Below are positions 38,577 through 64,000 of a DNA stretch of 64,000 bases, piece by piece. Every line of letters begins with the position of its first letter. Within the stretch, counting starts at the first letter, position 1. The stretch spans positions 5,022,001 through 5,086,000 of the forward strand of contig JBLDXI010000024.1 of assembly GCA_047495785.1 (NCBI GenBank), given 5' to 3'. The DNA is from Lepidodermella squamata (lineage: Eukaryota > Animalia > Gastrotricha). The notes below the pieces were generated by a model, which saw only the letters and a program-made list of their open reading frames with translations, was not told where the DNA came from and ran no database searches. A program made the translations under genes and the position numbers.

Positions 38577-38660
38577 TGTCAGAAGTGGGGTTCGAACCCA
38601 CGCCCTCTTTCGAGGACCAGATCTTGAGTCTGGCGCCTTAGACCGCTCGGCCATCCTGAC
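38577..38660 (-). tRNA. tRNA-Leu(CAA), module A (intact also at 47052, 51293, 53688, 56083, 63908)
   Basis: CCAGA-CT-CAA-GA-TCTGG anticodon arm, long variable arm. Confidence 0.95.
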
Positions 38661-38760
38661 CAGATGTAGCTACTCTGGGAAATTGTTGTAATCCATCCGA
38701 AAATATGAGAAATTTGGCCGTTTAAAGGGCGAGCGCATTGCATTGCCGCATCTATCGATA

Positions 38761-38825
38761 GGCGAAATGGCTATCGCGTCGGACTTCGGATCCGAAGATT
38801 GTGGGTTCGAGTCCCATCAGCGTCG
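38761..38825 (+). pseudogene. tRNA-Arg(TCG) pseudogene, module A (also at 42099, 47236, 51477, 53872, 56267)
   Basis: Lacks the first 8 nt (GGCGCTGT) present at 27653-27725, so the acceptor stem cannot form. Confidence 0.88.
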
Positions 38826-38915
38826 GCTCTATTTTTGCTGGCCTTTTCTTTCGGCTGAGCTGTTATCATAGCAACAGAATTATCACTTGTCAAGCTGTCA
38901 AGAATAATCACAAGG

Positions 38916-38988
38916 GCCTTCCTAGCTCAGTCGGTAGAGCATGTGACTTTTAATCACAGGGTCGGGGGTTCGAGTCCCCCGGAGGGCG
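38916..38988 (+). tRNA. tRNA-Lys(TTT), module A (6 copies)
   Basis: TGTGA-CT-TTT-AA-TCACA. Confidence 0.95.
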
Positions 38989-39055
38989 CAATATTTTTAC
39001 CCAGGGTAACATGTTTATGGCATCGACCGGCTGCTAAGAAGACGAAGATCTCGAA

Positions 39056-39128
39056 GGGGGATTAGCTCAAATGGTAGAGCGCTCGCTTAGCATGCGAGAG
39101 GTAACGGGATCGACGCCCGTATCCTCCA
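39056..39128 (+). tRNA. tRNA-Ala(AGC), module A (6 copies)
   Basis: CTCGC-TT-AGC-AT-GCGAG, G3:U70. Confidence 0.95.
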
Positions 39129-39201
39129 TATACTTTTTTCGGCAAGATAAAAAAGGCTGAAATGAGGAGACTGCGCTTGCGAAAATAAAGCAGTCAACCG
39201 C

Positions 39202-39273
39202 GGCTCAGTAGCTTAGTGGTAGAGCGTCTGCCTAGTAAGCAGAAGATCGAGGGTTCGATCCACCCCTGAGCCT
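39202..39273 (+). tRNA. tRNA-Thr(AGT), module A (6 copies, T-stem variants)
   Basis: TCTGC-CT-AGT-AA-GCAGA; this copy has two T-stem mismatches (GAGGG/CACCC). Confidence 0.82.
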
Positions 39274-39363
39274 GGTCTTGACACTTTTTGCAGCATTCGG
39301 AGGTCTTCCGTCCCTTTTATATAGCCATTTCATTCAGGATCAAAATTGGAAAGGCTAAAAGTG

Positions 39364-39435
39364 TTCCCTGACCGGGAATCGAACCCGGGCCGCCGCGGTG
39401 AAAGCGCGGAATCCTAACCACTAGACCATCAGGGA
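39364..39435 (-). tRNA. tRNA-Glu(TTC), module A (6 copies)
   Basis: CCGCG-CT-TTC-AC-CGCGG. Confidence 0.95.
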
Positions 39436-39526
39436 GGTGCAAAATCCCTGTTGTATGCGTAAACTGTGAAGAACTCAAATTATCAACGTCATCGCACCTT
39501 CAGCAACTCTGTGCAAAAAATAGAAT

Positions 39527-39598
39527 GGGCCCGTTCGGGAATTGAACCCGAGACCTCTCGCACCCGAAGCGAGAATCATACCCCTAGACCAACGGGCC
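39527..39598 (-). tRNA. tRNA-Pro(CGG), module A (6 copies)
   Basis: CTCGC-TT-CGG-GT-GCGAG. Confidence 0.95.
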
Positions 39599-39678
39599 AA
39601 CCTGACTTTACCCAATTGGCAACTGGCAACCAAAGACTTTATTAGAACGTCTCCAGCGTTTATGCAAAACATGCGATA

Positions 39679-39751
39679 CGCCGAGACCCGGGATCGAACC
39701 AGGGACCTTTAGATCTTCAGTCTAACGCTCTCCCAACTGAGCTATCTCGGC
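39679..39751 (-). tRNA. tRNA-Phe(GAA), module A (6 copies)
   Basis: TTAGA-CT-GAA-GA-TCTAA. Confidence 0.95.
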
Positions 39752-39848
39752 TGTTATTTACAGCAGTGCTAAAGTCGAAGCTTAACTTGTAGCTTAGCTA
39801 GGGAGCTCAATGCAGGCTGCTATGACTTTGGCAGCAAATAAAAAACTG

Positions 39849-39865
39849 CGCTCCTGGGTGGGCTC

Positions 39866-39905
<40 letters not shown>

Positions 39906-39922
39906 AATTGCGCCACAGAAGC
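39849..39922 (-). tRNA. tRNA-Asn(GTT), module A (6 copies)
   Basis: TTCGG-CT-GTT-AA-CCGAA. Confidence 0.95.
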
Positions 39923-40105
39923 TGGCTAATCGCAGACTCGGCATCACCACTCAGCAATATGTAGCTTTTAACGCGAGCGTTGCCATGATCACGTTGTTGC
40001 CGTTACAGTTTGGCTGTAGCCGAGGTTAGATCGGCCTTCGCATAGAATATAAACAGAGCTGAACTGTCCTTCATCAATGATCCTCAGCCGCTTTAGCTCT
40101 GCCAA

Positions 40106-40191
40106 CCCGCGATAGCTCAGCTGGTAGAGCGGAGGACTGTAGATGCAACGCAGCTATCCTTAGGTCGGTGGTTCAAGTCCGCCTCGCGGGA
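40106..40191 (+). tRNA. tRNA-Tyr(GTA) with 13-nt intron (40143-40155), module B (4 copies)
   Basis: GAGGA-CT-GTA-G [ATGCAACGCAGCT] A-TCCTT; intron at the canonical 37/38 position. Confidence 0.93.
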
Positions 40192-40268
40192 TTGCATGGT
40201 TTTTCACTTTCGTTGGGTAGCAGCTTTTCATTCGTTCGTCAGTAAAAATGCGCTGATAGATGTGCAAA

Positions 40269-40340
40269 GGCCCGTTGGTCTAGGGGTATGATTCTCGCTT
40301 TGGGTGCGAGAGGTCTCGGGTTCAAATCCCGGACGGGCCC
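40269..40340 (+). tRNA. tRNA-Pro(TGG), module B (4 copies)
   Basis: CTCGC-TT-TGG-GT-GCGAG. Confidence 0.95.
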
Positions 40341-40424
40341 AAGCTTTTTGAGCTAATAGCTGAAGCGGCAGCATTACAAAAGGTGTTTGCCATAACCTTG
40401 AGCGCATGTAATGTTATCACAGCG

Positions 40425-40495
40425 GCATCGGTGGTTCAGTGGTAGAATTCTCGCCTGCCACGCGGGAGGCCCGGGTTCGATTCCCGGCCGATGCA
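40425..40495 (+). tRNA. tRNA-Gly(GCC), module B (4 copies)
   Basis: GCATCGG/CCGATGC, CT-GCC-AC loop. Confidence 0.95.
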
Positions 40496-40591
40496 AGCGA
40501 CCCTGTTTTTTCATATCAGCTTCGATGTGCATCAGGCAAATTATGAGCGCAGCAAAATTAAAAGCACTGACAATTCAAGACGCTTCAGTCA

Positions 40592-40663
40592 TCCTTGGTA
40601 GTATAGTGGTTAGTATCCCCGCCTGTCACGCGGGAGACCAGGGTTCGATTCCCTGCCAAGGAG
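40592..40663 (+). tRNA. tRNA-Asp(GTC), module B (4 copies)
   Basis: TCCTTGG/CCAAGGA, CT-GTC-AC loop. Confidence 0.95.
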
Positions 40664-40733
40664 TCAGCTTTTTTAGTTGCGGCGCATAGGTTTCGAGCCA
40701 ATTTTTTGAGAAAATTGCTAAAAAGTTGATTGC

Positions 40734-40806
40734 CGCCCGATGTGGGGCTCGAACCCACGACCCTGGGATTAAGAGTCCCATGCTCTACCGACTGAGCTAA
40801 CCGGGC
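40734..40806 (-). tRNA. tRNA-Lys(CTT), module B (4 copies)
   Basis: TGGGA-CT-CTT-AA-TCCCA. Confidence 0.95.
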
Positions 40807-40885
40807 TGAGGCGCTATCAATTGCCTAAGCCGACAATTATGAAGCAGTTGACTGCTGGCGAATGTTGACTGCCATCAAAAATACT

Positions 40886-40958
40886 CGAGGCTGCCAGGAG
40901 TCGAACCTGGAATCTTCTGATCCGTAGTCAGACGCGTTGTCCATTGCGCCACAACCCC
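40886..40958 (-). tRNA. tRNA-Arg(ACG), module B (4 copies)
   Basis: TCTGA-CT-ACG-GA-TCAGA. Confidence 0.95.
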
Positions 40959-41025
40959 ATTCGGTCGAAAGAAGGCTTGCAAGCGCTAATTAGCAGGCAG
41001 GAATGGGACTGAAGTGAAAAATGCA

Positions 41026-41109
41026 TGTCAGAAGTGGGATTCGAACCCACGCCAGTAGAAACTGACTGCGACCTGAACGCAGCGCCTTGGACCGCTCGGC
41101 CATCCTGAC
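41026..41109 (-). tRNA. tRNA-Leu(CAG), module C, native form (also at 44364, 49501, 58532)
   Basis: CTGCG-TT-CAG-GT-CGCAG, T loop TTCGAAT. Confidence 0.95.
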
Positions 41110-41278
41110 GAGATGGTGGAATAGATTGCTGATATCCTGCAGACGGCATTTTGCAAAGCTAAGATATCGCAGAGCAAGTACAGCAAACAGCAAAGTCGTA
41201 TAACTGTTGCCAATATAAAACTAGCCAGCTACGCCGATCGGGGTGTATCGTTTCTTAAACTGCTGAAGAAGCACTCAA

Positions 41279-41360
41279 GTCGCTATGCCCGAGTGGTTAA
41301 GGGGTCTGACTAGAAATCAGATGCGGTCTCCGCGCGTAGGTTCAAATCCTACTGGCGACG
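41279..41360 (+). tRNA. tRNA-Ser(AGA), module C (14 copies)
   Basis: TCTGA-CT-AGA-AA-TCAGA, long variable arm. Confidence 0.95.
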
Positions 41361-41435
41361 ACAGTTATTTTTGCATTATAACGACTGAAACTCAGTTCTG
41401 CAGTTAGCCTCCAGAACAGTCCTCGCTTTCATCAG

Positions 41436-41507
41436 GCGTCAGTGGTGTAACGGTCAGCATGGTTGCCTTCCAAGCAGCCGATCCGGGTTCGACTCCCGGC
41501 TGACGCA
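41436..41507 (+). tRNA. tRNA-Gly(TCC), module C (14 copies)
   Basis: GTTGC-CT-TCC-AA-GCAGC. Confidence 0.95.
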
Positions 41508-41586
41508 CACGTTTTTAGCTCACACGTTTGAAAGCAATTGCTAGTGACGAGATTAAAGCTGTCCTTCCCAAAACCAGCGTTCGAGA

Positions 41587-41658
41587 GGTCCCATGGTGTA
41601 GCGGTTAGCACTCTGGACTCTGAATCCAGCGACTCGAGTTCGATTCTCGATGGGACCT
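41587..41658 (+). tRNA. tRNA-Gln(CTG), module C (14 copies)
   Basis: CTGGA-CT-CTG-AA-TCCAG. Confidence 0.95.
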
Positions 41659-41762
41659 TGATACGTTTTTTCAAACAAACTTTCAGCTCACTCACTCTCA
41701 GCTGATGGAAACTTGCGATCGCAATATTTGTTACCATTCAAACCTTTTCTTTCACTAGCCTA

Positions 41763-41834
41763 GGGGGCATAGCTCAGTGGTAGAGCGTCTCATTCGCATT
41801 GTGAAGGTCTCGGGTTCAATCCCCGATGCCTCCA
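41763..41834 (+). tRNA. tRNA-Ala(CGC), module C (14 copies)
   Basis: TCTCA-TT-CGC-AT-TGTGA, G3:U70. Confidence 0.9.
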
Positions 41835-41921
41835 GTTGGCAATTTTTTCGCGTAACCTCTCGAAGATTAGTTGCTATATCGGTGAAAGTGACCAGAAATT
41901 ACGCTAAAAATGTGAAAATAG

Positions 41922-41998
41922 TGTCAGAAGAGGGGTTCGAACCCACGCCCTCTTTCGAGGACCAGATCTTGAGTCTTATATCGCTCGGCCATCCTGAC
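41922..41998 (-). pseudogene. Damaged tRNA-Leu(CAA) at the start of unit 2
   Basis: GGCGCCTTAGAC is replaced by TATAT (net -7 nt, D arm and anticodon stem lost), plus a T-stem substitution. Confidence 0.85.
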
Positions 41999-45259: not shown

Positions 45260-45343
45260 TGTCAGAAGTGGGGTTCGAACCCACGCCAGTAGAAACTGAC
45301 TGCGACCTGAACGCAGCGCCTTGGACCGCTCGGCCATCCTGAC
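45260..45343 (-). tRNA. Chimeric tRNA-Leu(CAG) (also at 46156, 50397, 52792, 55187, 59428, 60324, 61220, 62116, 63012)
   Basis: Leu(CAG) body with a Leu(CAA)-type T loop (TTCGAAC) and the Leu(CAA) 3' flank. Confidence 0.9.
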
Positions 45344-47051
45344 GAGATGGTGGAATAGATTGCTGATATCCTGCAGACGGCATTTTGCAAAGCTAAGATA
45401 TCGCAGAGCAAGTACAGCAAACAGCAAAGTCGTATAACTGTTGCCAATATAAAACTAGCCAGCTACGCCGATCGGGGTGTATCGTTTCTTAAACTGCTGA
45501 AGAAGCACTCAAGTCGCTATGCCCGAGTGGTTAAGGGGTCTGACTAGAAATCAGATGCGGTCTCCGCGCGTAGGTTCAAATCCTACTGGCGACGACAGTT
45601 ATTTTTGCATTATAACGACTGAAACTCAGTTCTGCAGTTAGCCTCCAGAACAGTCCTCGCTTTCATCAGGCGTCAGTGGTGTAACGGTCAGCATGGTTGC
45701 CTTCCAAGCAGCCGATCCGGGTTCGACTCCCGGCTGACGCACACGTTTTTAGCTCACACGTTTGAAAGCAATTGCTAGTGACGAGATTAAAGCTGTCCTT
45801 CCCAAAACCAGCGTTCGAGAGGTCCCATGGTGTAGCGGTTAGCACTCTGGACTCTGAATCCAGCGACTCGAGTTCGATTCTCGATGGGACCTTGATACGT
45901 TTTTTCAAACAAACTTTCAGCTCACTCACTCTCAGCTGATGGAAACTTGCGATCGCAATATTTGTTACCATTCAAACCTTTTCTTTCACTAGCCTAGGGG
46001 GCATAGCTCAGTGGTAGAGCGTCTCATTCGCATTGTGAAGGTCTCGGGTTCAATCCCCGATGCCTCCAGTTGGCAATTTTTTCGCGTAACCTCTCGAAGA
46101 TTAGTTGCTATATCGGTGAAAGTGACCAGAAATTACGCTAAAAATGTGAAAATAGTGTCAGAAGTGGGGTTCGAACCCACGCCAGTAGAAACTGACTGCG
46201 ACCTGAACGCAGCGCCTTGGACCGCTCGGCCATCCTGACGAGATGGTGGAATAGATTGCTGATATCCTGCAGACGGCATTTTGCAAAGCTAAGATATCGC
46301 AGAGCAAGTACAGCAAACAGCAAAGTCGTATAACTGTTGCCAATATAAAACTAGCCAGCTACGCCGATCGGGGTGTATCGTTTCTTAAACTGCTGAAGAA
46401 GCACTCAAGTCGCTATGCCCGAGTGGTTAAGGGGTCTGACTAGAAATCAGATGCGGTCTCCGCGCGTAGGTTCAAATCCTACTGGCGACGACAGTTATTT
46501 TTGCATTATAACGACTGAAACTCAGTTCTGCAGTTAGCCTCCAGAACAGTCCTCGCTTTCATCAGGCGTCAGTGGTGTAACGGTCAGCATGGTTGCCTTC
46601 CAAGCAGCCGATCCGGGTTCGACTCCCGGCTGACGCACACGTTTTTAGCTCACACGTTTGAAAGCAATTGCTAGTGACGAGATTAAAGCTGTCCTTCCCA
46701 AAACCAGCGTTCGAGAGGTCCCATGGTGTAGCGGTTAGCACTCTGGACTCTGAATCCAGCGACTCGAGTTCGATTCTCGATGGGACCTTGATACGTTTTT
46801 TCAAACAAACTTTCAGCTCACTCACTCTCAGCTGATGGAAACTTGCGATCGCAATATTTGTTACCATTCAAACCTTTTCTTTCACTAGCCTAGGGGGCAT
46901 AGCTCAGTGGTAGAGCGTCTCATTCGCATTGTGAAGGTCTCGGGTTCAATCCCCGATGCCTCCAGTTGGCAATTTTTTCGCGTAACCTCTCGAAGATTAG
47001 TTGCTATATCGGTGAAAGTGACCAGAAATTACGCTAAAAATGTGAAAATAG

Positions 47052-48340
47052 TGTCAGAAGTGGGGTTCGAACCCACGCCCTCTTTCGAGGACCAGATCTT
47101 GAGTCTGGCGCCTTAGACCGCTCGGCCATCCTGACCAGATGTAGCTACTCTGGGAAATTGTTGTAATCCATCCGAAAATATGAGAAATTTGGCCGTTTAA
47201 AGGGCGAGCGCATTGCATTGCCGCATCTATCGATAGGCGAAATGGCTATCGCGTCGGACTTCGGATCCGAAGATTGTGGGTTCGAGTCCCATCAGCGTCG
47301 GCTCTATTTTTGCTGGCCTTTTCTTTCGGCTGAGCTGTTATCATAGCAACAGAATTATCACTTGTCAAGCTGTCAAGAATAATCACAAGGGCCTTCCTAG
47401 CTCAGTCGGTAGAGCATGTGACTTTTAATCACAGGGTCGGGGGTTCGAGTCCCCCGGAGGGCGCAATATTTTTACCCAGGGTAACATGTTTATGGCATCG
47501 ACCGGCTGCTAAGAAGACGAAGATCTCGAAGGGGGATTAGCTCAAATGGTAGAGCGCTCGCTTAGCATGCGAGAGGTAACGGGATCGACGCCCGTATCCT
47601 CCATATACTTTTTTCGGCAAGATAAAAAAGGCTGAAATGAGGAGACTGCGCTTGCGAAAATAAAGCAGTCAACCGCGGCTCAGTAGCTTAGTGGTAGAGC
47701 GTCTGCCTAGTAAGCAGAAGATCGAGGGTTCGATCCCCCCCTGAGCCTGGTCTTGACACTTTTTGCAGCATTCGGAGGTCTTCCGTCCCTTTTATATAGC
47801 CATTTCATTCAGGATCAAAATTGGAAAGGCTAAAAGTGTTCCCTGACCGGGAATCGAACCCGGGCCGCCGCGGTGAAAGCGCGGAATCCTAACCACTAGA
47901 CCATCAGGGAGGTGCAAAATCCCTGTTGTATGCGTAAACTGTGAAGAACTCAAATTATCAACGTCATCGCACCTTCAGCAACTCTGTGCAAAAAATAGAA
48001 TGGGCCCGTTCGGGAATTGAACCCGAGACCTCTCGCACCCGAAGCGAGAATCATACCCCTAGACCAACGGGCCAACCTGACTTTACCCAATTGGCAACTG
48101 GCAACCAAAGACTTTATTAGAACGTCTCCAGCGTTTATGCAAAACATGCGATACGCCGAGACCCGGGATCGAACCAGGGACCTTTAGATCTTCAGTCTAA
48201 CGCTCTCCCAACTGAGCTATCTCGGCTGTTATTTACAGCAGTGCTAAAGTCGAAGCTTAACTTGTAGCTTAGCTAGGGAGCTCAATGCAGGCTGCTATGA
48301 CTTTGGCAGCAAATAAAAAACTGCGCTCCTGGGTGGGCTC

Positions 48341-48380: not shown

Positions 48381-51292
48381 AATTGCGCCACAGAAGCTGG
48401 CTAATCGCAGACTCGGCATCACCACTCAGCAATATGTAGCTTTTAACGCGAGCGTTGCCATGATCACGTTGTTGCCGTTACAGTTTGGCTGTAGCCGAGG
48501 TTAGATCGGCCTTCGCATAGAATATAAACAGAGCTGAACTGTCCTTCATCAATGATCCTCAGCCGCTTTAGCTCTGCCAACCCGCGATAGCTCAGCTGGT
48601 AGAGCGGAGGACTGTAGATGCAACGCAGCTATCCTTAGGTCGGTGGTTCAAGTCCGCCTCGCGGGATTGCATGGTTTTTCACTTTCGTTGGGTAGCAGCT
48701 TTTCATTCGTTCGTCAGTAAAAATGCGCTGATAGATGTGCAAAGGCCCGTTGGTCTAGGGGTATGATTCTCGCTTTGGGTGCGAGAGGTCTCGGGTTCAA
48801 ATCCCGGACGGGCCCAAGCTTTTTGAGCTAATAGCTGAAGCGGCAGCATTACAAAAGGTGTTTGCCATAACCTTGAGCGCATGTAATGTTATCACAGCGG
48901 CATCGGTGGTTCAGTGGTAGAATTCTCGCCTGCCACGCGGGAGGCCCGGGTTCGATTCCCGGCCGATGCAAGCGACCCTGTTTTTTCATATCAGCTTCGA
49001 TGTGCATCAGGCAAATTATGAGCGCAGCAAAATTAAAAGCACTGACAATTCAAGACGCTTCAGTCATCCTTGGTAGTATAGTGGTTAGTATCCCCGCCTG
49101 TCACGCGGGAGACCAGGGTTCGATTCCCTGCCAAGGAGTCAGCTTTTTTAGTTGCGGCGCATAGGTTTCGAGCCAATTTTTTGAGAAAATTGCTAACAAG
49201 TTGATTGCCGCCCGATGTGGGGCTCGAACCCACGACCCTGGGATTAAGAGTCCCATGCTCTACCGACTGAGCTAACCGGGCTGAGGCGCTATCAATTGCC
49301 TAAGCCGACAATTATGAAGCAGTTGACTGCTGGCGAATGTTGACTGCCATCAAAAATACTCGAGGCTGCCAGGAGTCGAACCTGGAATCTTCTGATCCGT
49401 AGTCAGACGCGTTGTCCATTGCGCCACAACCCCATTCGGTCGAAAGAAGGCTTGCAAGCGCTAATTAGCAGGCAGGAATGGGACTGAAGTGAAAAATGCA
49501 TGTCAGAAGTGGGATTCGAACCCACGCCAGTAGAAACTGACTGCGACCTGAACGCAGCGCCTTGGACCGCTCGGCCATCCTGACGAGATGGTGGAATAGA
49601 TTGCTGATATCCTGCAGACGGCATTTTGCAAAGCTAAGATATCGCAGAGCAAGTACAGCAAACAGCAAAGTCGTATAACTGTTGCCAATATAAAACTAGC
49701 CAGCTACGCCGATCGGGGTGTATCGTTTCTTAAACTGCTGAAGAAGCACTCAAGTCGCTATGCCCGAGTGGTTAAGGGGTCTGACTAGAAATCAGATGCG
49801 GTCTCCGCGCGTAGGTTCAAATCCTACTGGCGACGACAGTTATTTTTGCATTATAACGACTGAAACTCAGTTCTGCAGTTAGCCTCCAGAACAGTCCTCG
49901 CTTTCATCAGGCGTCAGTGGTGTAACGGTCAGCATGGTTGCCTTCCAAGCAGCCGATCCGGGTTCGACTCCCGGCTGACGCACACGTTTTTAGCTCACAC
50001 GTTTGAAAGCAATTGCTAGTGACGAGATTAAAGCTGTCCTTCCCAAAACCAGCGTTCGAGAGGTCCCATGGTGTAGCGGTTAGCACTCTGGACTCTGAAT
50101 CCAGCGACTCGAGTTCGATTCTCGATGGGACCTTGATACGTTTTTTCAAACAAACTTTCAGCTCACTCACTCTCAGCTGATGGAAACTTGCGATCGCAAT
50201 ATTTGTTACCATTCAAACCTTTTCTTTCACTAGCCTAGGGGGCATAGCTCAGTGGTAGAGCGTCTCATTCGCATTGTGAAGGTCTCGGGTTCAATCCCCG
50301 ATGCCTCCAGTTGGCAATTTTTTCGCGTAACCTCTCGAAGATTAGTTGCTATATCGGTGAAAGTGACCAGAAATTACGCTAAAAATGTGAAAATAGTGTC
50401 AGAAGTGGGGTTCGAACCCACGCCAGTAGAAACTGACTGCGACCTGAACGCAGCGCCTTGGACCGCTCGGCCATCCTGACGAGATGGTGGAATAGATTGC
50501 TGATATCCTGCAGACGGCATTTTGCAAAGCTAAGATATCGCAGAGCAAGTACAGCAAACAGCAAAGTCGTATAACTGTTGCCAATATAAAACTAGCCAGC
50601 TACGCCGATCGGGGTGTATCGTTTCTTAAACTGCTGAAGAAGCACTCAAGTCGCTATGCCCGAGTGGTTAAGGGGTCTGACTAGAAATCAGATGCGGTCT
50701 CCGCGCGTAGGTTCAAATCCTACTGGCGACGACAGTTATTTTTGCATTATAACGACTGAAACTCAGTTCTGCAGTTAGCCTCCAGAACAGTCCTCGCTTT
50801 CATCAGGCGTCAGTGGTGTAACGGTCAGCATGGTTGCCTTCCAAGCAGCCGATCCGGGTTCGACTCCCGGCTGACGCACACGTTTTTAGCTCACACGTTT
50901 GAAAGCAATTGCTAGTGACGAGATTAAAGCTGTCCTTCCCAAAACCAGCGTTCGAGAGGTCCCATGGTGTAGCGGTTAGCACTCTGGACTCTGAATCCAG
51001 CGACTCGAGTTCGATTCTCGATGGGACCTTGATACGTTTTTTCAAACAAACTTTCAGCTCACTCACTCTCAGCTGATGGAAACTTGCGATCGCAATATTT
51101 GTTACCATTCAAACCTTTTCTTTCACTAGCCTAGGGGGCATAGCTCAGTGGTAGAGCGTCTCATTCGCATTGTGAAGGTCTCGGGTTCAATCCCCGATGC
51201 CTCCAGTTGGCAATTTTTTCGCGTAACCTCTCGAAGATTAGTTGCTATATCGGTGAAAGTGACCAGAAATTACGCTAAAAATGTGAAAATAG
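47052..51292. repeat. Array unit 3: A-B-C-C (4241 bp)
   Basis: 3345 + 896 bp. Confidence 0.95.
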
Positions 51293-52581
51293 TGTCAGAA
51301 GTGGGGTTCGAACCCACGCCCTCTTTCGAGGACCAGATCTTGAGTCTGGCGCCTTAGACCGCTCGGCCATCCTGACCAGATGTAGCTACTCTGGGAAATT
51401 GTTGTAATCCATCCGAAAATATGAGAAATTTGGCCGTTTAAAGGGCGAGCGCATTGCATTGCCGCATCTATCGATAGGCGAAATGGCTATCGCGTCGGAC
51501 TTCGGATCCGAAGATTGTGGGTTCGAGTCCCATCAGCGTCGGCTCTATTTTTGCTGGCCTTTTCTTTCGGCTGAGCTGTTATCATAGCAACAGAATTATC
51601 ACTTGTCAAGCTGTCAAGAATAATCACAAGGGCCTTCCTAGCTCAGTCGGTAGAGCATGTGACTTTTAATCACAGGGTCGGGGGTTCGAGTCCCCCGGAG
51701 GGCGCAATATTTTTACCCAGGGTAACATGTTTATGGCATCGACCGGCTGCTAAGAAGACGAAGATCTCGAAGGGGGATTAGCTCAAATGGTAGAGCGCTC
51801 GCTTAGCATGCGAGAGGTAACGGGATCGACGCCCGTATCCTCCATATACTTTTTTCGGCAAGATAAAAAAGGCTGAAATGAGGAGACTGCGCTTGCGAAA
51901 ATAAAGCAGTCAACCGCGGCTCAGTAGCTTAGTGGTAGAGCGTCTGCCTAGTAAGCAGAAGATCGAGGGTTCGATCCCCCCCTGAGCCTGGTCTTGACAC
52001 TTTTTGCAGCATTCGGAGGTCTTCCGTCCCTTTTATATAGCCATTTCATTCAGGATCAAAATTGGAAAGGCTAAAAGTGTTCCCTGACCGGGAATCGAAC
52101 CCGGGCCGCCGCGGTGAAAGCGCGGAATCCTAACCACTAGACCATCAGGGAGGTGCAAAATCCCTGTTGTATGCGTAAACTGTGAAGAACTCAAATTATC
52201 AACGTCATCGCACCTTCAGCAACTCTGTGCAAAAAATAGAATGGGCCCGTTCGGGAATTGAACCCGAGACCTCTCGCACCCGAAGCGAGAATCATACCCC
52301 TAGACCAACGGGCCAACCTGACTTTACCCAATTGGCAACTGGCAACCAAAGACTTTATTAGAACGTCTCCAGCGTTTATGCAAAACATGCGATACGCCGA
52401 GACCCGGGATCGAACCAGGGACCTTTAGATCTTCAGTCTAACGCTCTCCCAACTGAGCTATCTCGGCTGTTATTTACAGCAGTGCTAAAGTCGAAGCTTA
52501 ACTTGTAGCTTAGCTAGGGAGCTCAATGCAGGCTGCTATGACTTTGGCAGCAAATAAAAAACTGCGCTCCTGGGTGGGCTC

Positions 52582-52621
<40 letters not shown>

Positions 52622-54976
52622 AATTGCGCCACAGAAGCTGGCTAATCGCAGACTCGGCATCACCACTCAGCAATATGTAGCTTTTAACGCGAGCGTTGCC
52701 ATGATCACGTTGTTGCCGTTACAGTTTGGCTGTAGATTAGTTGCTATATCGGTGAAAGTGACCAGAAATTACGCTAAAAATGTGAAAATAGTGTCAGAAG
52801 TGGGGTTCGAACCCACGCCAGTAGAAACTGACTGCGACCTGAACGCAGCGCCTTGGACCGCTCGGCCATCCTGACGAGATGGTGGAATAGATTGCTGATA
52901 TCCTGCAGACGGCATTTTGCAAAGCTAAGATATCGCAGAGCAAGTACAGCAAACAGCAAAGTCGTATAACTGTTGCCAATATAAAACTAGCCAGCTACGC
53001 CGATCGGGGTGTATCGTTTCTTAAACTGCTGAAGAAGCACTCAAGTCGCTATGCCCGAGTGGTTAAGGGGTCTGACTAGAAATCAGATGCGGTCTCCGCG
53101 CGTAGGTTCAAATCCTACTGGCGACGACAGTTATTTTTGCATTATAACGACTGAAACTCAGTTCTGCAGTTAGCCTCCAGAACAGTCCTCGCTTTCATCA
53201 GGCGTCAGTGGTGTAACGGTCAGCATGGTTGCCTTCCAAGCAGCCGATCCGGGTTCGACTCCCGGCTGACGCACACGTTTTTAGCTCACACGTTTGAAAG
53301 CAATTGCTAGTGACGAGATTAAAGCTGTCCTTCCCAAAACCAGCGTTCGAGAGGTCCCATGGTGTAGCGGTTAGCACTCTGGACTCTGAATCCAGCGACT
53401 CGAGTTCGATTCTCGATGGGACCTTGATACGTTTTTTCAAACAAACTTTCAGCTCACTCACTCTCAGCTGATGGAAACTTGCGATCGCAATATTTGTTAC
53501 CATTCAAACCTTTTCTTTCACTAGCCTAGGGGGCATAGCTCAGTGGTAGAGCGTCTCATTCGCATTGTGAAGGTCTCGGGTTCAATCCCCGATGCCTCCA
53601 GTTGGCAATTTTTTCGCGTAACCTCTCGAAGATTAGTTGCTATATCGGTGAAAGTGACCAGAAATTACGCTAAAAATGTGAAAATAGTGTCAGAAGTGGG
53701 GTTCGAACCCACGCCCTCTTTCGAGGACCAGATCTTGAGTCTGGCGCCTTAGACCGCTCGGCCATCCTGACCAGATGTAGCTACTCTGGGAAATTGTTGT
53801 AATCCATCCGAAAATATGAGAAATTTGGCCGTTTAAAGGGCGAGCGCATTGCATTGCCGCATCTATCGATAGGCGAAATGGCTATCGCGTCGGACTTCGG
53901 ATCCGAAGATTGTGGGTTCGAGTCCCATCAGCGTCGGCTCTATTTTTGCTGGCCTTTTCTTTCGGCTGAGCTGTTATCATAGCAACAGAATTATCACTTG
54001 TCAAGCTGTCAAGAATAATCACAAGGGCCTTCCTAGCTCAGTCGGTAGAGCATGTGACTTTTAATCACAGGGTCGGGGGTTCGAGTCCCCCGGAGGGCGC
54101 AATATTTTTACCCAGGGTAACATGTTTATGGCATCGACCGGCTGCTAAGAAGACGAAGATCTCGAAGGGGGATTAGCTCAAATGGTAGAGCGCTCGCTTA
54201 GCATGCGAGAGGTAACGGGATCGACGCCCGTATCCTCCATATACTTTTTTCGGCAAGATAAAAAAGGCTGAAATGAGGAGACTGCGCTTGCGAAAATAAA
54301 GCAGTCAACCGCGGCTCAGTAGCTTAGTGGTAGAGCGTCTGCCTAGTAAGCAGAAGATCGAGGGTTCGATCCACCCCTGAGCCTGGTCTTGACACTTTTT
54401 GCAGCATTCGGAGGTCTTCCGTCCCTTTTATATAGCCATTTCATTCAGGATCAAAATTGGAAAGGCTAAAAGTGTTCCCTGACCGGGAATCGAACCCGGG
54501 CCGCCGCGGTGAAAGCGCGGAATCCTAACCACTAGACCATCAGGGAGGTGCAAAATCCCTGTTGTATGCGTAAACTGTGAAGAACTCAAATTATCAACGT
54601 CATCGCACCTTCAGCAACTCTGTGCAAAAAATAGAATGGGCCCGTTCGGGAATTGAACCCGAGACCTCTCGCACCCGAAGCGAGAATCATACCCCTAGAC
54701 CAACGGGCCAACCTGACTTTACCCAATTGGCAACTGGCAACCAAAGACTTTATTAGAACGTCTCCAGCGTTTATGCAAAACATGCGATACGCCGAGACCC
54801 GGGATCGAACCAGGGACCTTTAGATCTTCAGTCTAACGCTCTCCCAACTGAGCTATCTCGGCTGTTATTTACAGCAGTGCTAAAGTCGAAGCTTAACTTG
54901 TAGCTTAGCTAGGGAGCTCAATGCAGGCTGCTATGACTTTGGCAGCAAATAAAAAACTGCGCTCCTGGGTGGGCTC

Positions 54977-55016
<40 letters not shown>

Positions 55017-56082
55017 AATTGCGCCACAGAAGCTGGCTAATCGCAGACTCGGCATCACCACTCAGCAATATGTAGCTTTTAACGCGAGCGTTGCCATGAT
55101 CACGTTGTTGCCGTTACAGTTTGGCTGTAGATTAGTTGCTATATCGGTGAAAGTGACCAGAAATTACGCTAAAAATGTGAAAATAGTGCCAGAAGTGGGG
55201 TTCGAACCCACGCCAGTAGAAACTGACTGCGACCTGAACGCAGCGCCTTGGACCGCTCGGCCATCCTGACGAGATGGTGGAATAGATTGCTGATATCCTG
55301 CAGACGGCATTTTGCAAAGCTAAGATATCGCAGAGCAAGTACAGCAAACAGCAAAGTCGTATAACTGTTGCCAATATAAAACTAGCCAGCTACGCCGATC
55401 GGGGTGTATCGTTTCTTAAACTGCTGAAGAAGCACTCAAGTCGCTATGCCCGAGTGGTTAAGGGGTCTGACTAGAAATCAGATGCGGTCTCCGCGCGTAG
55501 GTTCAAATCCTACTGGCGACGACAGTTATTTTTGCATTATAACGACTGAAACTCAGTTCTGCAGTTAGCCTCCAGAACAGTCCTCGCTTTCATCAGGCGT
55601 CAGTGGTGTAACGGTCAGCATGGTTGCCTTCCAAGCAGCCGATCCGGGTTCGACTCCCGGCTGACGCACACGTTTTTAGCTCACACGTTTGAAAGCAATT
55701 GCTAGTGACGAGATTAAAGCTGTCCTTCCCAAAACCAGCGTTCGAGAGGTCCCATGGTGTAGCGGTTAGCACTCTGGACTCTGAATCCAGCGACTCGAGT
55801 TCGATTCTCGATGGGACCTTGATACGTTTTTTCAAACAAACTTTCAGCTCACTCACTCTCAGCTGATGGAAACTTGCGATCGCAATATTTGTTACCATTC
55901 AAACCTTTTCTTTCACTAGCCTAGGGGGCATAGCTCAGTGGTAGAGCGTCTCATTCGCATTGTGAAGGTCTCGGGTTCAATCCCCGATGCCTCCAGTTGG
56001 CAATTTTTTCGCGTAACCTCTCGAAGATTAGTTGCTATATCGGTGAAAGTGACCAGAAATTACGCTAAAAATGTGAAAATAG
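51293..56082. repeat. Array units 4 and 5: A-C deletion units (2 x 2395 bp)
   Basis: Identical junction GGCTGT-AG-ATTAGTTGC at 52734 and 55129; module B is absent. Confidence 0.95.
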
Positions 56083-57371
56083 TGTCAGAAGTGGGGTTCG
56101 AACCCACGCCCTCTTTCGAGGACCAGATCTTGAGTCTGGCGCCTTAGACCGCTCGGCCATCCTGACCAGATGTAGCTACTCTGGGAAATTGTTGTAATCC
56201 ATCCGAAAATATGAGAAATTTGGCCGTTTAAAGGGCGAGCGCATTGCATTGCCGCATCTATCGATAGGCGAAATGGCTATCGCGTCGGACTTCGGATCCG
56301 AAGATTGTGGGTTCGAGTCCCATCAGCGTCGGCTCTATTTTTGCTGGCCTTTTCTTTCGGCTGAGCTGTTATCATAGCAACAGAATTATCACTTGTCAAG
56401 CTGTCAAGAATAATCACAAGGGCCTTCCTAGCTCAGTCGGTAGAGCATGTGACTTTTAATCACAGGGTCGGGGGTTCGAATCCCCCGGAGGGCGCAATAT
56501 TTTTACCCAGGGTAACATGTTTATGGCATCGACCGGCTGCTAAGAAGACGAAGATCTCGAAGGGGGATTAGCTCAAATGGTAGAGCGCTCGCTTAGCATG
56601 CGAGAGGTAACGGGATCGACGCCCGTATCCTCCATATACTTTTTTCGGCAAGATAAAAAAGGCTGAAATGAGGAGACTGCGCTTGCGAAAATAAAGCAGT
56701 CAACCGCGGCTCAGTAGCTTAGTGGTAGAGCGTCTGCCTAGTAAGATGAAGATCGAGGGTTCGATCCCCCCCTGAGCCTGGTCTTGACACTTTTTGCAGC
56801 ATTCGGAGGTCTTCCGTCCCTTTTATATAGCCATTTCATTCAGGATCAAAATTGGAAAGGCTAAAAGTGTTCCCTGACCGGGAATCGAACCCGGGCCGCC
56901 GCGGTGAAAGCGCGGAATCCTAACCACTAGACCATCAGGGAGGTGCAAAATCCCTGTTGTATGCGTAAACTGTGAAGAACTCAAATTATCAACGTCATCG
57001 CACCTTCAGCAACTCTGTGCAAAAAATAGAATGGGCCCGTTCGGGAATTGAACCCGAGACCTCTCGCACCCGAAGCGAGAATCATACCCCTAGACCAACG
57101 GGCCAACCTGACTTTACCCAATTGGCAACTGGCAACCAAAGACTTTATTAGAACGTCTCCAGCGTTTATGCAAAACATGCGATACGCCGAGACCCGGGAT
57201 CGAACCAGGGACCTTTAGATCTTCAGTCTAACGCTCTCCCAACTGAGCTATCTCGGCTGTTATTTACAGCAGTGCTAAAGTCGAAGCTTAACTTGTAGCT
57301 TAGCTAGGGAGCTCAATGCAGGCTGCTATGACTTTGGCAGCAAATAAAAAACTGCGCTCCTGGGTGGGCTC

Positions 57372-57411
<40 letters not shown>

Positions 57412-60400
57412 AATTGCGCCACAGAAGCTGGCTAATCGCAGACTCGGCATCACCACTCAGCAATATGTAGCTTTTAACGCGAGCGTTGCCATGATCACGT
57501 TGTTGCCGTTACAGTTTGGCTGTAGCCGAGGTTAGATCGGCCTTCGCATAGAATATAAACAGAGCTGAACTGTCCTTCATCAATGATCCTCAGCCGCTTT
57601 AGCTCTGCCAACCCGCGATAGCTCAGCTGGTAGAGCGGAGGACTGTAGATGCAACGCAGCTATCCTTAGGTCGGTGGTTCAAGTCCGCCTCGCGGGATTG
57701 CATGGTTTTTCACTTTCGTTGGGTAGCAGCTTTTCATTCGTTCGTCAGTAAAAATGCGCTGATAGATGTGCAAAGGCCCGTTGGTCTAGGGGTATGATTC
57801 TCGCTTTGGGTGCGAGAGGTCTCGGGTTCAAATCCCGGACGGGCCCAAGCTTTTTGAGCTAATAGCTGAAGCGGCAGCATTACAAAAGGTGTTTGCCATA
57901 ACCTTGAGCGCATGTAATGTTATCACAGCGGCATCGGTGGTTCAGTGGTAGAATTCTCGCCTGCCACGCGGGAGGCCCGGGTTCGATTCCCGGCCGATGC
58001 AAGCGACCCTGTTTTTTCATATCAGCTTCGATGTGCATCAGGCAAATTATGAGCGCAGCAAAATCAAAAGCACTGACAATTCAAGACGCTACAGTCATCC
58101 TTGGTAGTATAGTGGTTAGTATCCCCGCCTGTCACGCGGGAGACCAGGGTTCGATTCCCTGCCAAGGAGTCAGCTTTTTTAGTTGCGGCGCATATATTTC
58201 GAGCCAATTTTTTGAGAAAATTGCTAAAAAGTTGATTGCCGCCCGATGTGGGGCTCGAACCCACGACCCTGGGATTAAGAGTCCCATGCTCTACCGACTG
58301 AGCTAACCGGGCTGAGGCGCTATCAATTGCCTAAGCCGACAATTATGAAGCAGTTGACTGCTGGCGAATGTTGACTGCCATCAAAAATACTCGAGGCTGC
58401 CAGGAGTCGAACCTGGAATCTTCTGATCCGTAGTCAGACGCGTTGTCCATTGCGCCACAACCCCATTCGGTCGAAAGAAGGCTTGCAAGCGCTAATTAGC
58501 AGGCAGGAATGGGACTGAAGTGAAAAATGCATGTCAGAAGTGGGATTCGAACCCACGCCAGTAGAAACTGACTGCGACCTGAACGCAGCGCCTTGGACCG
58601 CTCGGCCATCCTGACGAGATGGTGGAATAGATTGCTGATATCCTGCAGACGGCATTTTGCAAAGCTAAGATATCGCAGAGCAAGTACAGCAAACAGCAAA
58701 GTCGTATAACTGTTGCCAATATAAAACTAGCCAGCTACGCCGATCGGGGTGTATCGTTTCTTAAACTGCTGAAGAAGCACTCAAGTCGCTATGCCCGAGT
58801 GGTTAAGGGGTCTGACTAGAAATCAGATGCGGTCTCCGCGCGTAGGTTCAAATCCTACTGGCGACGACAGTTATTTTTGCATTATAACGACTGAAACTCA
58901 GTTCTGCAGTTAGCCTCCAGAACAGTCCTCGCTTTCATCAGGCGTCAGTGGTGTAACGGTCAGCATGGTTGCCTTCCAAGCAGCCGATCCGGGTTCGACT
59001 CCCGGCTGACGCACACGTTTTTAGCTCACACGTTTGAAAGCAATTGCTAGTGACGAGATTAAAGCTGTCCTTCCCAAAACCAGCGTTCGAGAGGTCCCAT
59101 GGTGTAGCGGTTAGCACTCTGGACTCTGAATCCAGCGACTCGAGTTCGATTCTCGATGGGACCTTGATACGTTTTTTCAAACAAACTTTCAGCTCACTCA
59201 CTCTCAGCTGATGGAAACTTGCGATCGCAATATTTGTTACCATTCAAACCTTTTCTTTCACTAGCCTAGGGGGCATAGCTCAGTGGTAGAGCGTCTCATT
59301 CGCATTGTGAAGGTCTCGGGTTCAATCCCCGATGCCTCCAGTTGGCAATTTTTTCGCGTAACCTCTCGAAGATTAGTTGCTATATCGGTGAAAGTGACCA
59401 GAAATTACGCTAAAAATGTGAAAATAGTGTCAGAAGTGGGGTTCGAACCCACGCCAGTAGAAACTGACTGCGACCTGAACGCAGCGCCTTGGACCGCTCG
59501 GCCATCCTGACGAGATGGTGGAATAGATTGCTGATATCCTGCAGACGGCATTTTGCAAAGCTAAGATATCGCAGAGCAAGTACAGCAAACAGCAAAGTCG
59601 TATAACTGTTGCCAATATAAAACTAGCCAGCTACGCCGATCGGGGTGTATCGTTTCTTAAACTGCTGAAGAAGCACTCAAGTCGCTATGCCCGAGTGGTT
59701 AAGGGGTCTGACTAGAAATCAGATGCGGTCTCCGCGCGTAGGTTCAAATCCTACTGGCGACGACAGTTATTTTTGCATTATAACGACTGAAACTCAGTTC
59801 TGCAGTTAGCCTCCAGAACAGTCCTCGCTTTCATCAGGCGTCAGTGGTGTAACGGTCAGCATGGTTGCCTTCCAAGCAGCCGATCCGGGTTCGACTCCCG
59901 GCTGACGCACACGTTTTTAGCTCACACGTTTGAAAGCAATTGCTAGTGACGAGATTAAAGCTGTCCTTCCCAAAACCAGCGTTCGAGAGGTCCCATGGTG
60001 TAGCGGTTAGCACTCTGGACTCTGAATCCAGCGACTCGAGTTCGATTCTCGATGGGACCTTGATACGTTTTTTCAAACAAACTTTCAGCTCACTCACTCT
60101 CAGCTGATGGAAACTTGCGATCGCAATATTTGTTACCATTCAAACCTTTTCTTTCACTAGCCTAGGGGGCATAGCTCAGTGGTAGAGCGTCTCATTCGCA
60201 TTGTGAAGGTCTCGGGTTCAATCCCCGATGCCTCCAGTTGGCAATTTTTTCGCGTAACCTCTCGAAGATTAGTTGCTATATCGGTGAAAGTGACCAGAAA
60301 TTACGCTAAAAATGTGAAAATAGTGTCAGAAGTGGGGTTCGAACCCACGCCAGTAGAAACTGACTGCGACCTGAACGCAGCGCCTTGGACCGCTCGGCCA

Positions 60401-63400
60401 TCCTGACGAGATGGTGGAATAGATTGCTGATATCCTGCAGACGGCATTTTGCAAAGCTAAGATATCGCAGAGCAAGTACAGCAAACAGCAAAGTCGTATA
60501 ACTGTTGCCAATATAAAACTAGCCAGCTACGCCGATCGGGGTGTATCGTTTCTTAAACTGCTGAAGAAGCACTCAAGTCGCTATGCCCGAGTGGTTAAGG
60601 GGTCTGACTAGAAATCAGATGCGGTCTCCGCGCGTAGGTTCAAATCCTACTGGCGACGACAGTTATTTTTGCATTATAACGACTGAAACTCAGTTCTGCA
60701 GTTAGCCTCCAGAACAGTCCTCGCTTTCATCAGGCGTCAGTGGTGTAACGGTCAGCATGGTTGCCTTCCAAGCAGCCGATCCGGGTTCGACTCCCGGCTG
60801 ACGCACACGTTTTTAGCTCACACGTTTGAAAGCAATTGCTAGTGACGAGATTAAAGCTGTCCTTCCCAAAACCAGCGTTCGAGAGGTCCCATGGTGTAGC
60901 GGTTAGCACTCTGGACTCTGAATCCAGCGACTCGAGTTCGATTCTCGATGGGACCTTGATACGTTTTTTCAAACAAACTTTCAGCTCACTCACTCTCAGC
61001 TGATGGAAACTTGCGATCGCAATATTTGTTACCATTCAAACCTTTTCTTTCACTAGCCTAGGGGGCATAGCTCAGTGGTAGAGCGTCTCATTCGCATTGT
61101 GAAGGTCTCGGGTTCAATCCCCGATGCCTCCAGTTGGCAATTTATTCGCGTAACCTCTCGAAGATTAGTTGCTATATCGGTGAAAGTGACCAGAAATTAC
61201 GCTAAAAATGTGAAAATAGTGTCAGAAGTGGGGTTCGAACCCACGCCAGTAGAAACTGACTGCGACCTGAACGCAGCGCCTTGGACCGCTCGGCCATCCT
61301 GACGAGATGGTGGAATAGATTGCTGATATCCTGCAGACGGCATTTTGCAAAGCTAAGATATCGCAGAGCAAGTACAGCAAACAGCAAAGTCGTATAACTG
61401 TTGCCAATATAAAACTAGCCAGCTACGCCGATCGGGGTGTATCGTTTCTTAAACTGCTGAAGAAGCACTCAAGTCGCTATGCCCGAGTGGTTAAGGGGTC
61501 TGACTAGAAATCAGATGCGGTCTCCGCGCGTAGGTTCAAATCCTACTGGCGACGACAGTTATTTTTGCATTATAACGACTGAAACTCAGTTCTGCAGTTA
61601 GCCTCCAGAACAGTCCTCGCTTTCATCAGGCGTCAGTGGTGTAACGGTCAGCATGGTTGCCTTCCAAGCAGCCGATCCGGGTTCGACTCCCGGCTGACGC
61701 ACACGTTTTTAGCTCACACGTTTGAAAGCAATTGCTAGTGACGAGATTAAAGCTGTCCTTCCCAAAACCAGCGTTCGAGAGGTCCCATGGTGTAGCGGTT
61801 AGCACTCTGGACTCTGAATCCAGCGACTCGAGTTCGATTCTCGATGGGACCTTGATACGTTTTTTCAAACAAACTTTCAGCTCACTCACTCTCAGCTGAT
61901 GGAAACTTGCGATCGCAATATTTGTTACCATTCAAACCTTTTCTTTCACTAGCCTAGGGGGCATAGCTCAGTGGTAGAGCGTCTCATTCGCATTGTGAAG
62001 GTCTCGGGTTCAATCCCCGATGCCTCCAGTTGGCAATTTTTTCGCGTAACCTCTCGAAGATTAGTTGCTATATCGGTGAAAGTGACCAGAAATTACGCTA
62101 AAAATGTGAAAATAGTGTCAGAAGTGGGGTTCGAACCCACGCCAGTAGAAACTGACTGCGACCTGAACGCAGCGCCTTGGACCGCTCGGCCATCCTGACG
62201 AGATGGTGGAATAGATTGCTGATATCCTGCAGACGGCATTTTGCAAAGCTAAGATATCGCAGAGCAAGTACAGCAAACAGCAAAGTCGTATAACTGTTGC
62301 CAATATAAAACTAGCCAGCTACGCCGATCGGGGTGTATCGTTTCTTAAACTGCTGAAGAAGCACTCAAGTCGCTATGCCCGAGTGGTTAAGGGGTCTGAC
62401 TAGAAATCAGATGCGGTCTCCGCGCGTAGGTTCAAATCCTACTGGCGACGACAGTTATTTTTGCATTATAACGACTGAAACTCAGTTCTGCAGTTAGCCT
62501 CCAGAACAGTCCTCGCTTTCATCAGGCGTCAGTGGTGTAACGGTCAGCATGGTTGCCTTCCAAGCAGCCGATCCGGGTTCGACTCCCGGCTGACGCACAC
62601 GTTTTTAGCTCACACGTTTGAAAGCAATTGCTAGTGACGAGATTAAAGCTGTCCTTCCCAAAACCAGCGTTCGAGAGGTCCCATGGTGTAGCGGTTAGCA
62701 CTCTGGACTCTGAATCCAGCGACTCGAGTTCGATTCTCGATGGGACCTTGATACGTTTTTTCAAACAAACTTTCAGCTCACTCACTCTCAGCTGATGGAA
62801 ACTTGCGATCGCAATATTTGTTACCATTCAAACCTTTTCTTTCACTAGCCTAGGGGGCATAGCTCAGTGGTAGAGCGTCTCATTCGCATTGTGAAGGTCT
62901 CGGGTTCAATCCCCGATGCCTCCAGTTGGCAATTTATTCGCGTAACCTCTCGAAGATTAGTTGCTATATCGGTGAAAGTGACCAGAAATTACGCTAAAAA
63001 TGTGAAAATAGTGTCAGAAGTGGGGTTCGAACCCACGCCAGTAGAAACTGACTGCGACCTGAACGCAGCGCCTTGGACCGCTCGGCCATCCTGACGAGAT
63101 GGTGGAATAGATTGCTGATATCCTGCAGACGGCATTTTGCAAAGCTAAGATATCGCAGAGCAAGTACAGCAAACAGCAAAGTCGTATAACTGTTGCCAAT
63201 ATAAAACTAGCCAGCTACGCCGATCGGGGTGTATCGTTTCTTAAACTGCTGAAGAAGCACTCAAGTCGCTATGCCCGAGTGGTTAAGGGGTCTGACTAGA
63301 AATCAGATGCGGTCTCCGCGCGTAGGTTCAAATCCTACTGGCGACGACAGTTATTTTTGCATTATAACGACTGAAACTCAGTTCTGCAGTTAGCCTCCAG

Positions 63401-63907
63401 AACAGTCCTCGCTTTCATCAGGCGTCAGTGGTGTAACGGTCAGCATGGTTGCCTTCCAAGCAGCCGATCCGGGTTCGACTCCCGGCTGACGCACACGTTT
63501 TTAGCTCACACGTTTGAAAGCAATTGCTAGTGACGAGATTAAAGCTGTCCTTCCCAAAACCAGCGTTCGAGAGGTCCCATGGTGTAGCGGTTAGCACTCT
63601 GGACTCTGAATCCAGCGACTCGAGTTCGATTCTCGATGGGACCTTGATACGTTTTTTCAAACAAACTTTCAGCTCACTCACTCTCAGCTGATGGAAACTT
63701 GCGATCGCAATATTTGTTACCATTCAAACCTTTTCTTTCACTAGCCTAGGGGGCATAGCTCAGTGGTAGAGCGTCTCATTCGCATTGTGAAGGTCTCGGG
63801 TTCAATCCCCGATGCCTCCAGTTGGCAATTTTTTCGCGTAACCTCTCGAAGATTAGTTGCTATATCGGTGAAAGTGACCAGAAATTACGCTAAAAATGTG
63901 AAAATAG
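56083..63907. repeat. Array unit 6: A-B-C x6
   Basis: C modules at 58532, 59428, 60324, 61220, 62116 and 63012. Confidence 0.95.
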
Positions 63908-64000
63908 TGTCAGAAGTGGGGTTCGAACCCACGCCCTCTTTCGAGGACCAGATCTTGAGTCTGGCGCCTTAGACCGCTCGGCCATCCTGACCAGATGTAG

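Follow-up and report, generated by a model that had tools for sequence, protein, structure and literature searches.

The DNA analysed here (the window) is a 64,000-nucleotide stretch of genomic DNA from Lepidodermella squamata, a gastrotrich, and a tandem array of tRNA genes (tDNA array) occupies its right-hand part. The left edge of the array adjoins protein genes in a gene-dense flank and carries a 27-bp copy of the 5′ flank of the left-most Leu-CAA gene (about 38,540–38,566). Per-gene BLAST counted exactly 149 tRNA genes or pseudogenes at 38,577–63,991. ARAGORN detected 138 of them (38,576 to 63,991), its intron-aware mode added four Tyr-GTA genes and one damaged Leu-CAA gene, and the truncated Arg-TCG copies were recovered by an Rfam search. 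The figure of about 149 copies in 25 kb given in an earlier note on this DNA thus holds as a count, but seven of the copies are damaged, namely six dead Arg-TCG genes and one Leu-CAA gene (41,922) with a 7-nt deletion. The array, its first complete unit and the genes of that unit are as follows; composite features are given without a strand.

38562–64000: whole tandem tDNA array, open at its right end, where it runs off the window
38562–41906: first complete 3,345-bp unit with 20 genes, from self-BLAST and segmentation
38577–38660, − strand: tRNA-Leu(CAA), the left-most gene
38753–38825, + strand: dead tRNA-Arg(TCG), whose Rfam match covers model positions 9–63 only
38916–39273, + strand: Lys-TTT, Ala-AGC and Thr-AGT
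39364–39922, − strand: Glu-TTC, Pro-CGG, Phe-GAA and Asn-GTT
40106–40663, + strand: Tyr-GTA (13-nt intron), Pro-TGG, Gly-GCC and Asp-GTC, from intron-aware ARAGORN
40734–41109, − strand: Lys-CTT, Arg-ACG and the parental Leu-CAG
41279–41834, + strand: Ser-AGA, Gly-TCC, Gln-CTG and Ala-CGC

The complete unit measures 2,449 + 896 = 3,345 bp and holds 20 genes, one per 167 bp; tRNA makes up about 45% of the sequence. The earlier note had described a 3.3-kb unit of 20 tRNA genes at a spacing of about 170 bp; intron-aware ARAGORN, Rfam and per-gene BLAST returned exactly 20 and matched the listed gene order and strands exactly. As it had also claimed, no anticodon is repeated within the unit, which has no gene for Met, Trp, Cys, His, Ile or Val. 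The 20 different anticodons, distributed over both strands, serve 14 amino acids, six of them twice. A search for 5S genes within the unit gave none at E ≤ 10, the long spacers hide no tRNA or 5S remnants, and Tandem Repeats Finder reported no match beyond 31.8 kb and thus none in the array.

The 19 intact genes score 53.6–70.5 bits against the Rfam tRNA model. In Arg-TCG, an 8-nt deletion between two GGCG repeats has removed the 5′ acceptor strand in six of six array copies, and Thr-AGT carries one or two T-stem mismatches in the array, being polymorphic at 39,262. The genes show A34 anticodons, the 13-nt Tyr intron, an Ala G3:U70 pair and no encoded CCA, and judged by these eukaryotic features they are cytosolic eukaryotic tRNA genes. 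A tRNA-derived SINE was ruled out, since the unit contains 19 distinct full cytosolic-type tRNAs rather than one tRNA-like head with a tail; an organellar or bacterial tRNA operon was ruled out by the A34 anticodons, the Tyr intron and the presence of genes on both strands. Low-score intron-containing ARAGORN predictions to the left of 38 kb were rejected as they had no Rfam support.

In 20 of 20 genes the sense strand has a run of four or more T residues no more than 16 nt downstream, compared with one of 20 upstream and a background of 14.5%. Since each gene has its own T-run terminator, standard Pol III anatomy suggests that the genes are separate Pol III units rather than an operon. Of the three spacers between head-to-head genes, two are long (183 and 169 bp, against 67–104 bp for the others), which fits the upstream room that each gene would need and is suggestive only. 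An upstream TATA or CAA motif was not found (10 of 19 genes versus a background of 40%), and clustering of the genes by strand within the unit was not significant (p = 0.066). The 19 intact anticodons would read from 28 (strict) to 34 (generous wobble) of the 61 codons, missing 27–33, and they cover 53–60% of the codons in the long ORFs of the window. These figures, and the dead Arg allele in all six copies, bear on the proposal of the earlier note that the cassette may supply a large part of the decoding set.

Cutting the array at each Leu gene gave three classes of segment: AB of 2,449 bp (n = 4, one of which is 2,442 bp), S of 896 bp (n = 14) and A of 1,499 bp (n = 2). As assembled, they follow one another as AB S AB S S S AB S S A S A S AB S S S S S S, and a new Leu-CAA follows the last S segment at the end of the window. 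The repeated 3.3-kb unit of the earlier note is therefore tandem, but it is complete only four times, starting at 38,562, 41,907, 47,037 and 56,068, with only the first two adjacent; the rest consists of 896-bp and 2,395-bp units. The S segment, a sub-unit of five genes, accounts for 12.5 of the 25.4 kb, and the two 2,395-bp units are without six genes (the Tyr-to-Arg-ACG block). Gene dosage is consequently 14:6:4, with 14 copies of Leu-CAG, Ser, Gly-TCC, Gln and Ala-CGC, six or seven of the genes from Leu-CAA to Asn and four of those from Tyr to Arg-ACG. The shorter units are located as follows.

45261–47052: two extra 896-bp sub-units, each beginning with a chimeric Leu-CAG
50398–51293: further 896-bp sub-unit with a chimeric Leu-CAG
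51294–56083: two 2,395-bp deletion units
59429–63908: run of five 896-bp chimeric sub-units, from segmentation

Alignment revealed that ten of the 14 Leu-CAG genes are chimeric: a CAG body is followed by Leu-CAA sequence at the T-loop base, the 3′ end and the flank downstream. All ten have one common crossover interval, the 14 bp around the B box (T-arm) that Leu-CAG and Leu-CAA share, and the chimeric product is predicted to fold like its parent. The two paralogues lie 896 bp apart, and unequal exchange between them would account for the S sub-unit. A spacer SNP is common to the alternate sub-unit copies at 60,325 and 62,117. In the deletion units, the junctions lie at 52,734–52,735 and 55,129–55,130 with 2-bp microhomology, and the Asn–Tyr spacer (equivalent to 40,019) is fused to the spacer preceding a chimeric Leu gene. 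As the junction abuts the spacer of the chimera, the 11-gene deletion appears to postdate the chimera. Furthermore, the two deletion units carry different Thr alleles, and the same polymorphism is split among the full units; with the junction on both alleles, at least one exchange or new mutation must have occurred after it formed.

The earlier note placed the array at 38577–64000. Diverged pieces of the cassette are also present outside these limits, at 17.5–18.2, 26.6–27.9 and 31.4–31.6 kb, the second of them in one arm of an inverted duplication.

17507–18254, + strand: outlying piece with the Ser 3′ end, Gly-TCC, Gln-CTG, Ala-CGC, Leu-CAA and a decayed Leu remnant
26611–27925, − strand: inverted outlying piece from Leu-CAA to part of Asn, with an intact Arg-TCG; left arm of the duplication
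31364–31568, − strand: outlying single Thr-AGT with flanks
28156–30467, + strand, and 35540–38225, − strand: two pairs of intronless Cys-loop receptor genes, an old inverted duplication

The three outlying pieces, all to the left of the array, are 93–96% identical to the cassette (93.7% to the unit for the first and 95.6% to the array for the inverted one). The intact Arg-TCG is at 27,653–27,725 within the inverted piece, and the outlying Thr-AGT has a fully paired T-stem and scores 73 bits, against 60 in the first array units. The arms of the inverted duplication span 26,611–30,455 and 35,564–39,892, and each consists of two intronless Cys-loop receptor genes with the cassette joined at the same point on the outer side. 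Between the receptor paralogues, identity is about 77% and divergence 0.44 substitutions per four-fold site, whereas between the cassette arms the first kilobase matches at about 99% and the spacers have diverged by 0.027 substitutions per site. Identity between the arms steps from 0.68 to 0.99 at the 3′ end of Leu-CAA, and in likeness between the arms the cassette surpasses the adjoining coding genes about 16-fold. Such a contrast across one duplication is direct evidence that the array undergoes concerted evolution. The simplest reading of these sequences is that the cassette has probably resided at the locus since the duplication and that homogenisation has acted on it from then on, over a distance of 11 kb and between inverted copies; its recent independent insertion at both of the paralogous points is a less likely account.

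Within the array, copies of the 896-bp sub-unit differ by a mean of about one position per 896 bp and by three at most, spacers and genes both being near-identical. The concerted evolution proposed in the earlier note is thus borne out within the array as well as between the arms. Between the outlying pieces and the array, 4 of 943 sites are substituted in genes and 38 of 1,113 in spacers (p = 4 × 10−7), so that spacers drift about eight times faster than genes. Variants among copies, tallied by hand, are divided 7:5 between genes and spacers, compared with 5:55 for the outlier differences (p = 3 × 10−4); the outlier comparisons overlap slightly in the Thr region, which makes both p values somewhat optimistic. 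The two ratios fit weak selection on any one copy combined with purging over the long term. Alternatively, genes may have stayed more conserved than spacers through conversion with tRNA genes at other sites, and not because the array copies are used.

The locus is a genuine nuclear tDNA array, exceptionally dense, multi-isoacceptor, and modular rather than uniform. A head-to-tail tRNA unit, near-identical spacers, full Rfam matches for 19 of 20 genes and terminators for all 20 are what was found of a tandem tDNA array. The comparison with rDNA drawn in the earlier note applies to turnover only, as genes on both strands with their own terminators make no single precursor, and three unit lengths with six strand switches per unit differ from the one uniform, co-oriented transcription unit of rDNA. 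Taken together, the sequence data favour, with a probability of roughly 0.7, a dense multi-isoacceptor array under concerted evolution that is likely to be one of many redundant sources of cytosolic tRNA. From the observed anatomy, junctions, homogenisation and gene-over-spacer conservation, a probable order of events may be proposed. A compact cluster of 20 independent RNA polymerase III genes, with internal promoters and their own terminators, would have been amplified head to tail, its copies being homogenised by unequal crossing-over and gene conversion as in rDNA. Crossovers would have taken place within the tRNA genes themselves, and the 896-bp sub-unit would stem from a misaligned exchange within the 14 bp common to Leu-CAG and Leu-CAA. 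A later microhomology deletion would have taken 11 genes out of a pair made up of one full unit and one sub-unit, after which the sub-unit and the deletion product would both have been re-amplified. Transcription and any role in dosage are presumed: the likely function is bulk supply of cytosolic tRNA by many such redundant arrays, with selection acting on the genome-wide pool, so that single copies and even a whole gene type (Arg-TCG) may decay locally. The spread of the dead Arg allele and of a damaged Thr allele through the array speaks against such a supply role.

The array might instead be real yet mostly silent. On this view a tRNA cluster happens to form the building block of a repeat resembling a satellite, which persists through chromatin or boundary effects or without any reason, and the working tRNAs are encoded in other arrays. 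Arg-TCG is dead in all six copies, the Thr T-stem is damaged, variants within genes occur among copies, and dosage is skewed by position rather than by codon need; furthermore, clustered tDNAs of Arabidopsis are described as silenced in two reports (PMC7544208, PMC12308677). However, despite an apparent residence since a duplication 0.44 substitutions per site old, 19 of the 20 genes remain intact, as do all terminators, and the spacers have drifted about eight times faster than the genes. Silence of the array is considered improbable, if the least so of the alternatives. A more far-reaching reading may also be considered. Essentially the whole cytosolic tRNA set might have moved into a few compact multi-isoacceptor cassettes arrayed at many loci, where Leu × Leu crossovers would re-dose subsets of anticodons and the choice of cassette and number of sub-units would tune the pool by stage or tissue; this reading is speculative, with perhaps one chance in eight or so of being correct.

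The probable source of the window is the published L. squamata assembly (122 Mb, 157 contigs, GC 43%), for which the DNA of a single animal underwent multiple displacement amplification (MDA) and was sequenced as HiFi reads of 13.4 kb, less than the length of the array, and which has 2.25× coverage in repeat-rich blocks (PMC11660948). The cassette could then be real while its modular order and copy number arose partly in assembly or in whole-genome amplification, where phi29 may switch templates or copy an 896-bp circle by the rolling-circle mode. MDA chimeras join at 2–21 nt of complementarity, like the 14-bp and 2-bp junctions of the array, but more than 85% of them are inversions (PMC1855051), whereas the array junctions are direct. 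In addition, the junctions recur ten and two times with copy-specific SNPs, two alleles carry the deletion junction, the inverted outlier retains an intact Arg gene and at 95.6% identity is no 100% copy, and the authors of the assembly found no chimeric contig (PMC11660948). Recurring direct junctions with copy-specific SNPs, together with outliers at 4–7% divergence, speak for a genomic origin of the cassette and its modules, and a partly artefactual module order and copy number is quite unlikely. Least credible of all is an adaptive, dosage-balanced decoding cassette with selected content and order and a partner cassette for the remaining codons, to which the lack of repeated anticodons among 20 genes, the strand blocks of about four genes and the two long divergent spacers would lend themselves, but in which balance has been freely lost (14:6:4), 27–33 codons are missed and the strand clustering is not significant.

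The earlier note held that known tandem tDNA units carry far fewer tRNA types. This stands for the animal examples found, which have at most eight genes, and fails for the fungus Schizosaccharomyces japonicus, chromosome 2 of which bears tandem 5.6–6.8-kb units of 18 tRNA genes in 34 and 46 copies (PMC7619369). Each unit serves 16 amino acids and includes three 5S genes and LTRs, and a subtelomeric 15-gene unit also has a shorter deletion variant (PMC7619369). Both organisms therefore have tandem units of many different tRNAs; however, the L. squamata unit contains no 5S gene and is about twice as dense, and its array, the right end of which lies outside the window, abuts protein genes at the left edge; the S. 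japonicus arrays lie in gene-poor centromeric or telomeric DNA. The two are presumably of independent origin. Units of comparable complexity are thus already described in S. japonicus, but not in an animal in the literature searched.

Among animals, the 3.18-kb repeat that occurs in tandem in Xenopus laevis has eight tRNA genes (Muller, Clarkson & Galas, 1987, cited in PMC1635290) and resembles the present unit in its length and in having several isoacceptors, but holds 8 genes rather than 20, and the Xenopus clusters are described as oocyte-specific. The human 1q23.3 tDNA VNTR has five genes in 7.3 kb (PMC4041453), with less than 6% tRNA as against about 45% here. Near-identical spacers in animal tandem tDNA are shared with human 1q23.3 and with Hydractinia and Nematostella; the passages on Hydractinia in PMC11067881 describe regularly spaced arrays whose copies are nearly identical, and contain no unit of 20 types, and the paper terms tandem tDNA arrays unusual outside Entamoeba. 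In Entamoeba, nearly all tRNA genes are in homogenised tandem arrays of several unit types, with at most five genes per unit (PMC2652664), and the spacers of E. histolytica are filled with short tandem repeats, unlike those between the genes of the L. squamata array. Richer animal units or nuclear tRNA arrays of gastrotrichs were not found in the literature searched, which excluded most subscription journals, and the L. squamata genome paper does not mention tRNA (PMC11660948). Small-RNA data from L. squamata are described in PMC6468455. In metagenomes, the Thr-AGT pattern had no match, and the Gly–Gln adjacency pattern matched two unrelated contigs.

The richest animal unit found described therefore has eight genes, while that of L. 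squamata has 20 at near-minimal spacing. The locus is a rare natural experiment on concerted evolution, in which a dated duplication sets coding genes that have diverged next to a cassette that has been homogenised, one crossover is placed within 14 bp, and a dead Arg-TCG spreads although an intact one persists at a distance of 11 kb. It brings two old questions within reach of existing kinds of data: whether selection acts on tRNA gene dosage anticodon by anticodon, and whether tRNA genes are hot spots of recombination. For the centromeric repeats of fission yeast, recombination mediated by tRNA genes has been proposed.

The proteins encoded in the window are of animal type. No exact record was found for a 691-amino-acid ankyrin protein, and a GPCR piece had no match, which says nothing on kin of other lengths. 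The two best matches to an SLC6 exon lie on contigs without tRNAs; with exons searched singly, this exon gave full-length matches at 44–49% across animals.

Within the tandem tDNA array, the discriminator base of tRNA-Phe(GAA) (39,679-39,751, minus strand) is apparently G73, as it is in the copy lying in the outlying, diverged cassette pieces to the left of the array (26,732-26,804, plus strand); the discriminator of animal Phe tRNAs is usually A. A pseudogene confined to a single copy was found for Leu-CAA (41,922-41,998, minus strand), in which a 7-nt deletion and substitutions in the D/anticodon arm are accompanied by a change in the T-stem. The full unit at 56,084-58,532 carries several private differences, located in the Lys T-loop, the Thr anticodon stem and three spacer sites and exceeding those of the other units, and possibly reflects conversion from another array.

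A tandem unit of 1.7 kb with four vertebrate-type tRNA genes (two Gln-CTG, Glu-CTC and initiator Met) was also encountered on two metagenome contigs unrelated to the array:
L003, 1-2130, contig with the four-tRNA tandem unit
L004, 1-1747, contig with the four-tRNA tandem unit
The spacers of this unit show no homology to those of the array, and both contigs are probably fish DNA.

The outlying cassette pieces include a truncated Asn gene at 26,611 and have two decayed scraps next to them:
26,500-26,611, Phe-like scrap
18,212-18,254, Leu-like scrap

Four intronless, divergent Cys-loop receptor genes belong to an old inverted duplication, the centre of which holds two further features:
28,156-30,467, plus strand, Cys-loop receptor genes, part of the set of four
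30,840-31,274, minus strand, small ORF rich in Cys and Pro
32,547-34,089, minus strand, possible glycosyltransferase-like gene
35,540-38,225, minus strand, Cys-loop receptor genes, rest of the set
The left copy of the first receptor gene contains an in-frame stop at 28,834-28,836. The tested pieces of the Cys/Pro-rich ORF and of the glycosyltransferase-like gene had no match in Pfam.

Further protein genes were located to the left of the array:
3,475-16,500, ankyrin-repeat gene cluster, which also includes a kinase-like piece
4,993-5,508, RING-finger ORF
6,144-8,219, ankyrin-SOCS-box protein, a member of the cluster
9,864-14,240, ORF of 1,458 aa built of 34-aa repeats, in the cluster
19,809-24,961, plus strand, SLC6 (GABA/betaine-type) transporter gene with several exons
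One exon of the SLC6 gene shares an identity of only 44-49% with its best full-length animal matches.
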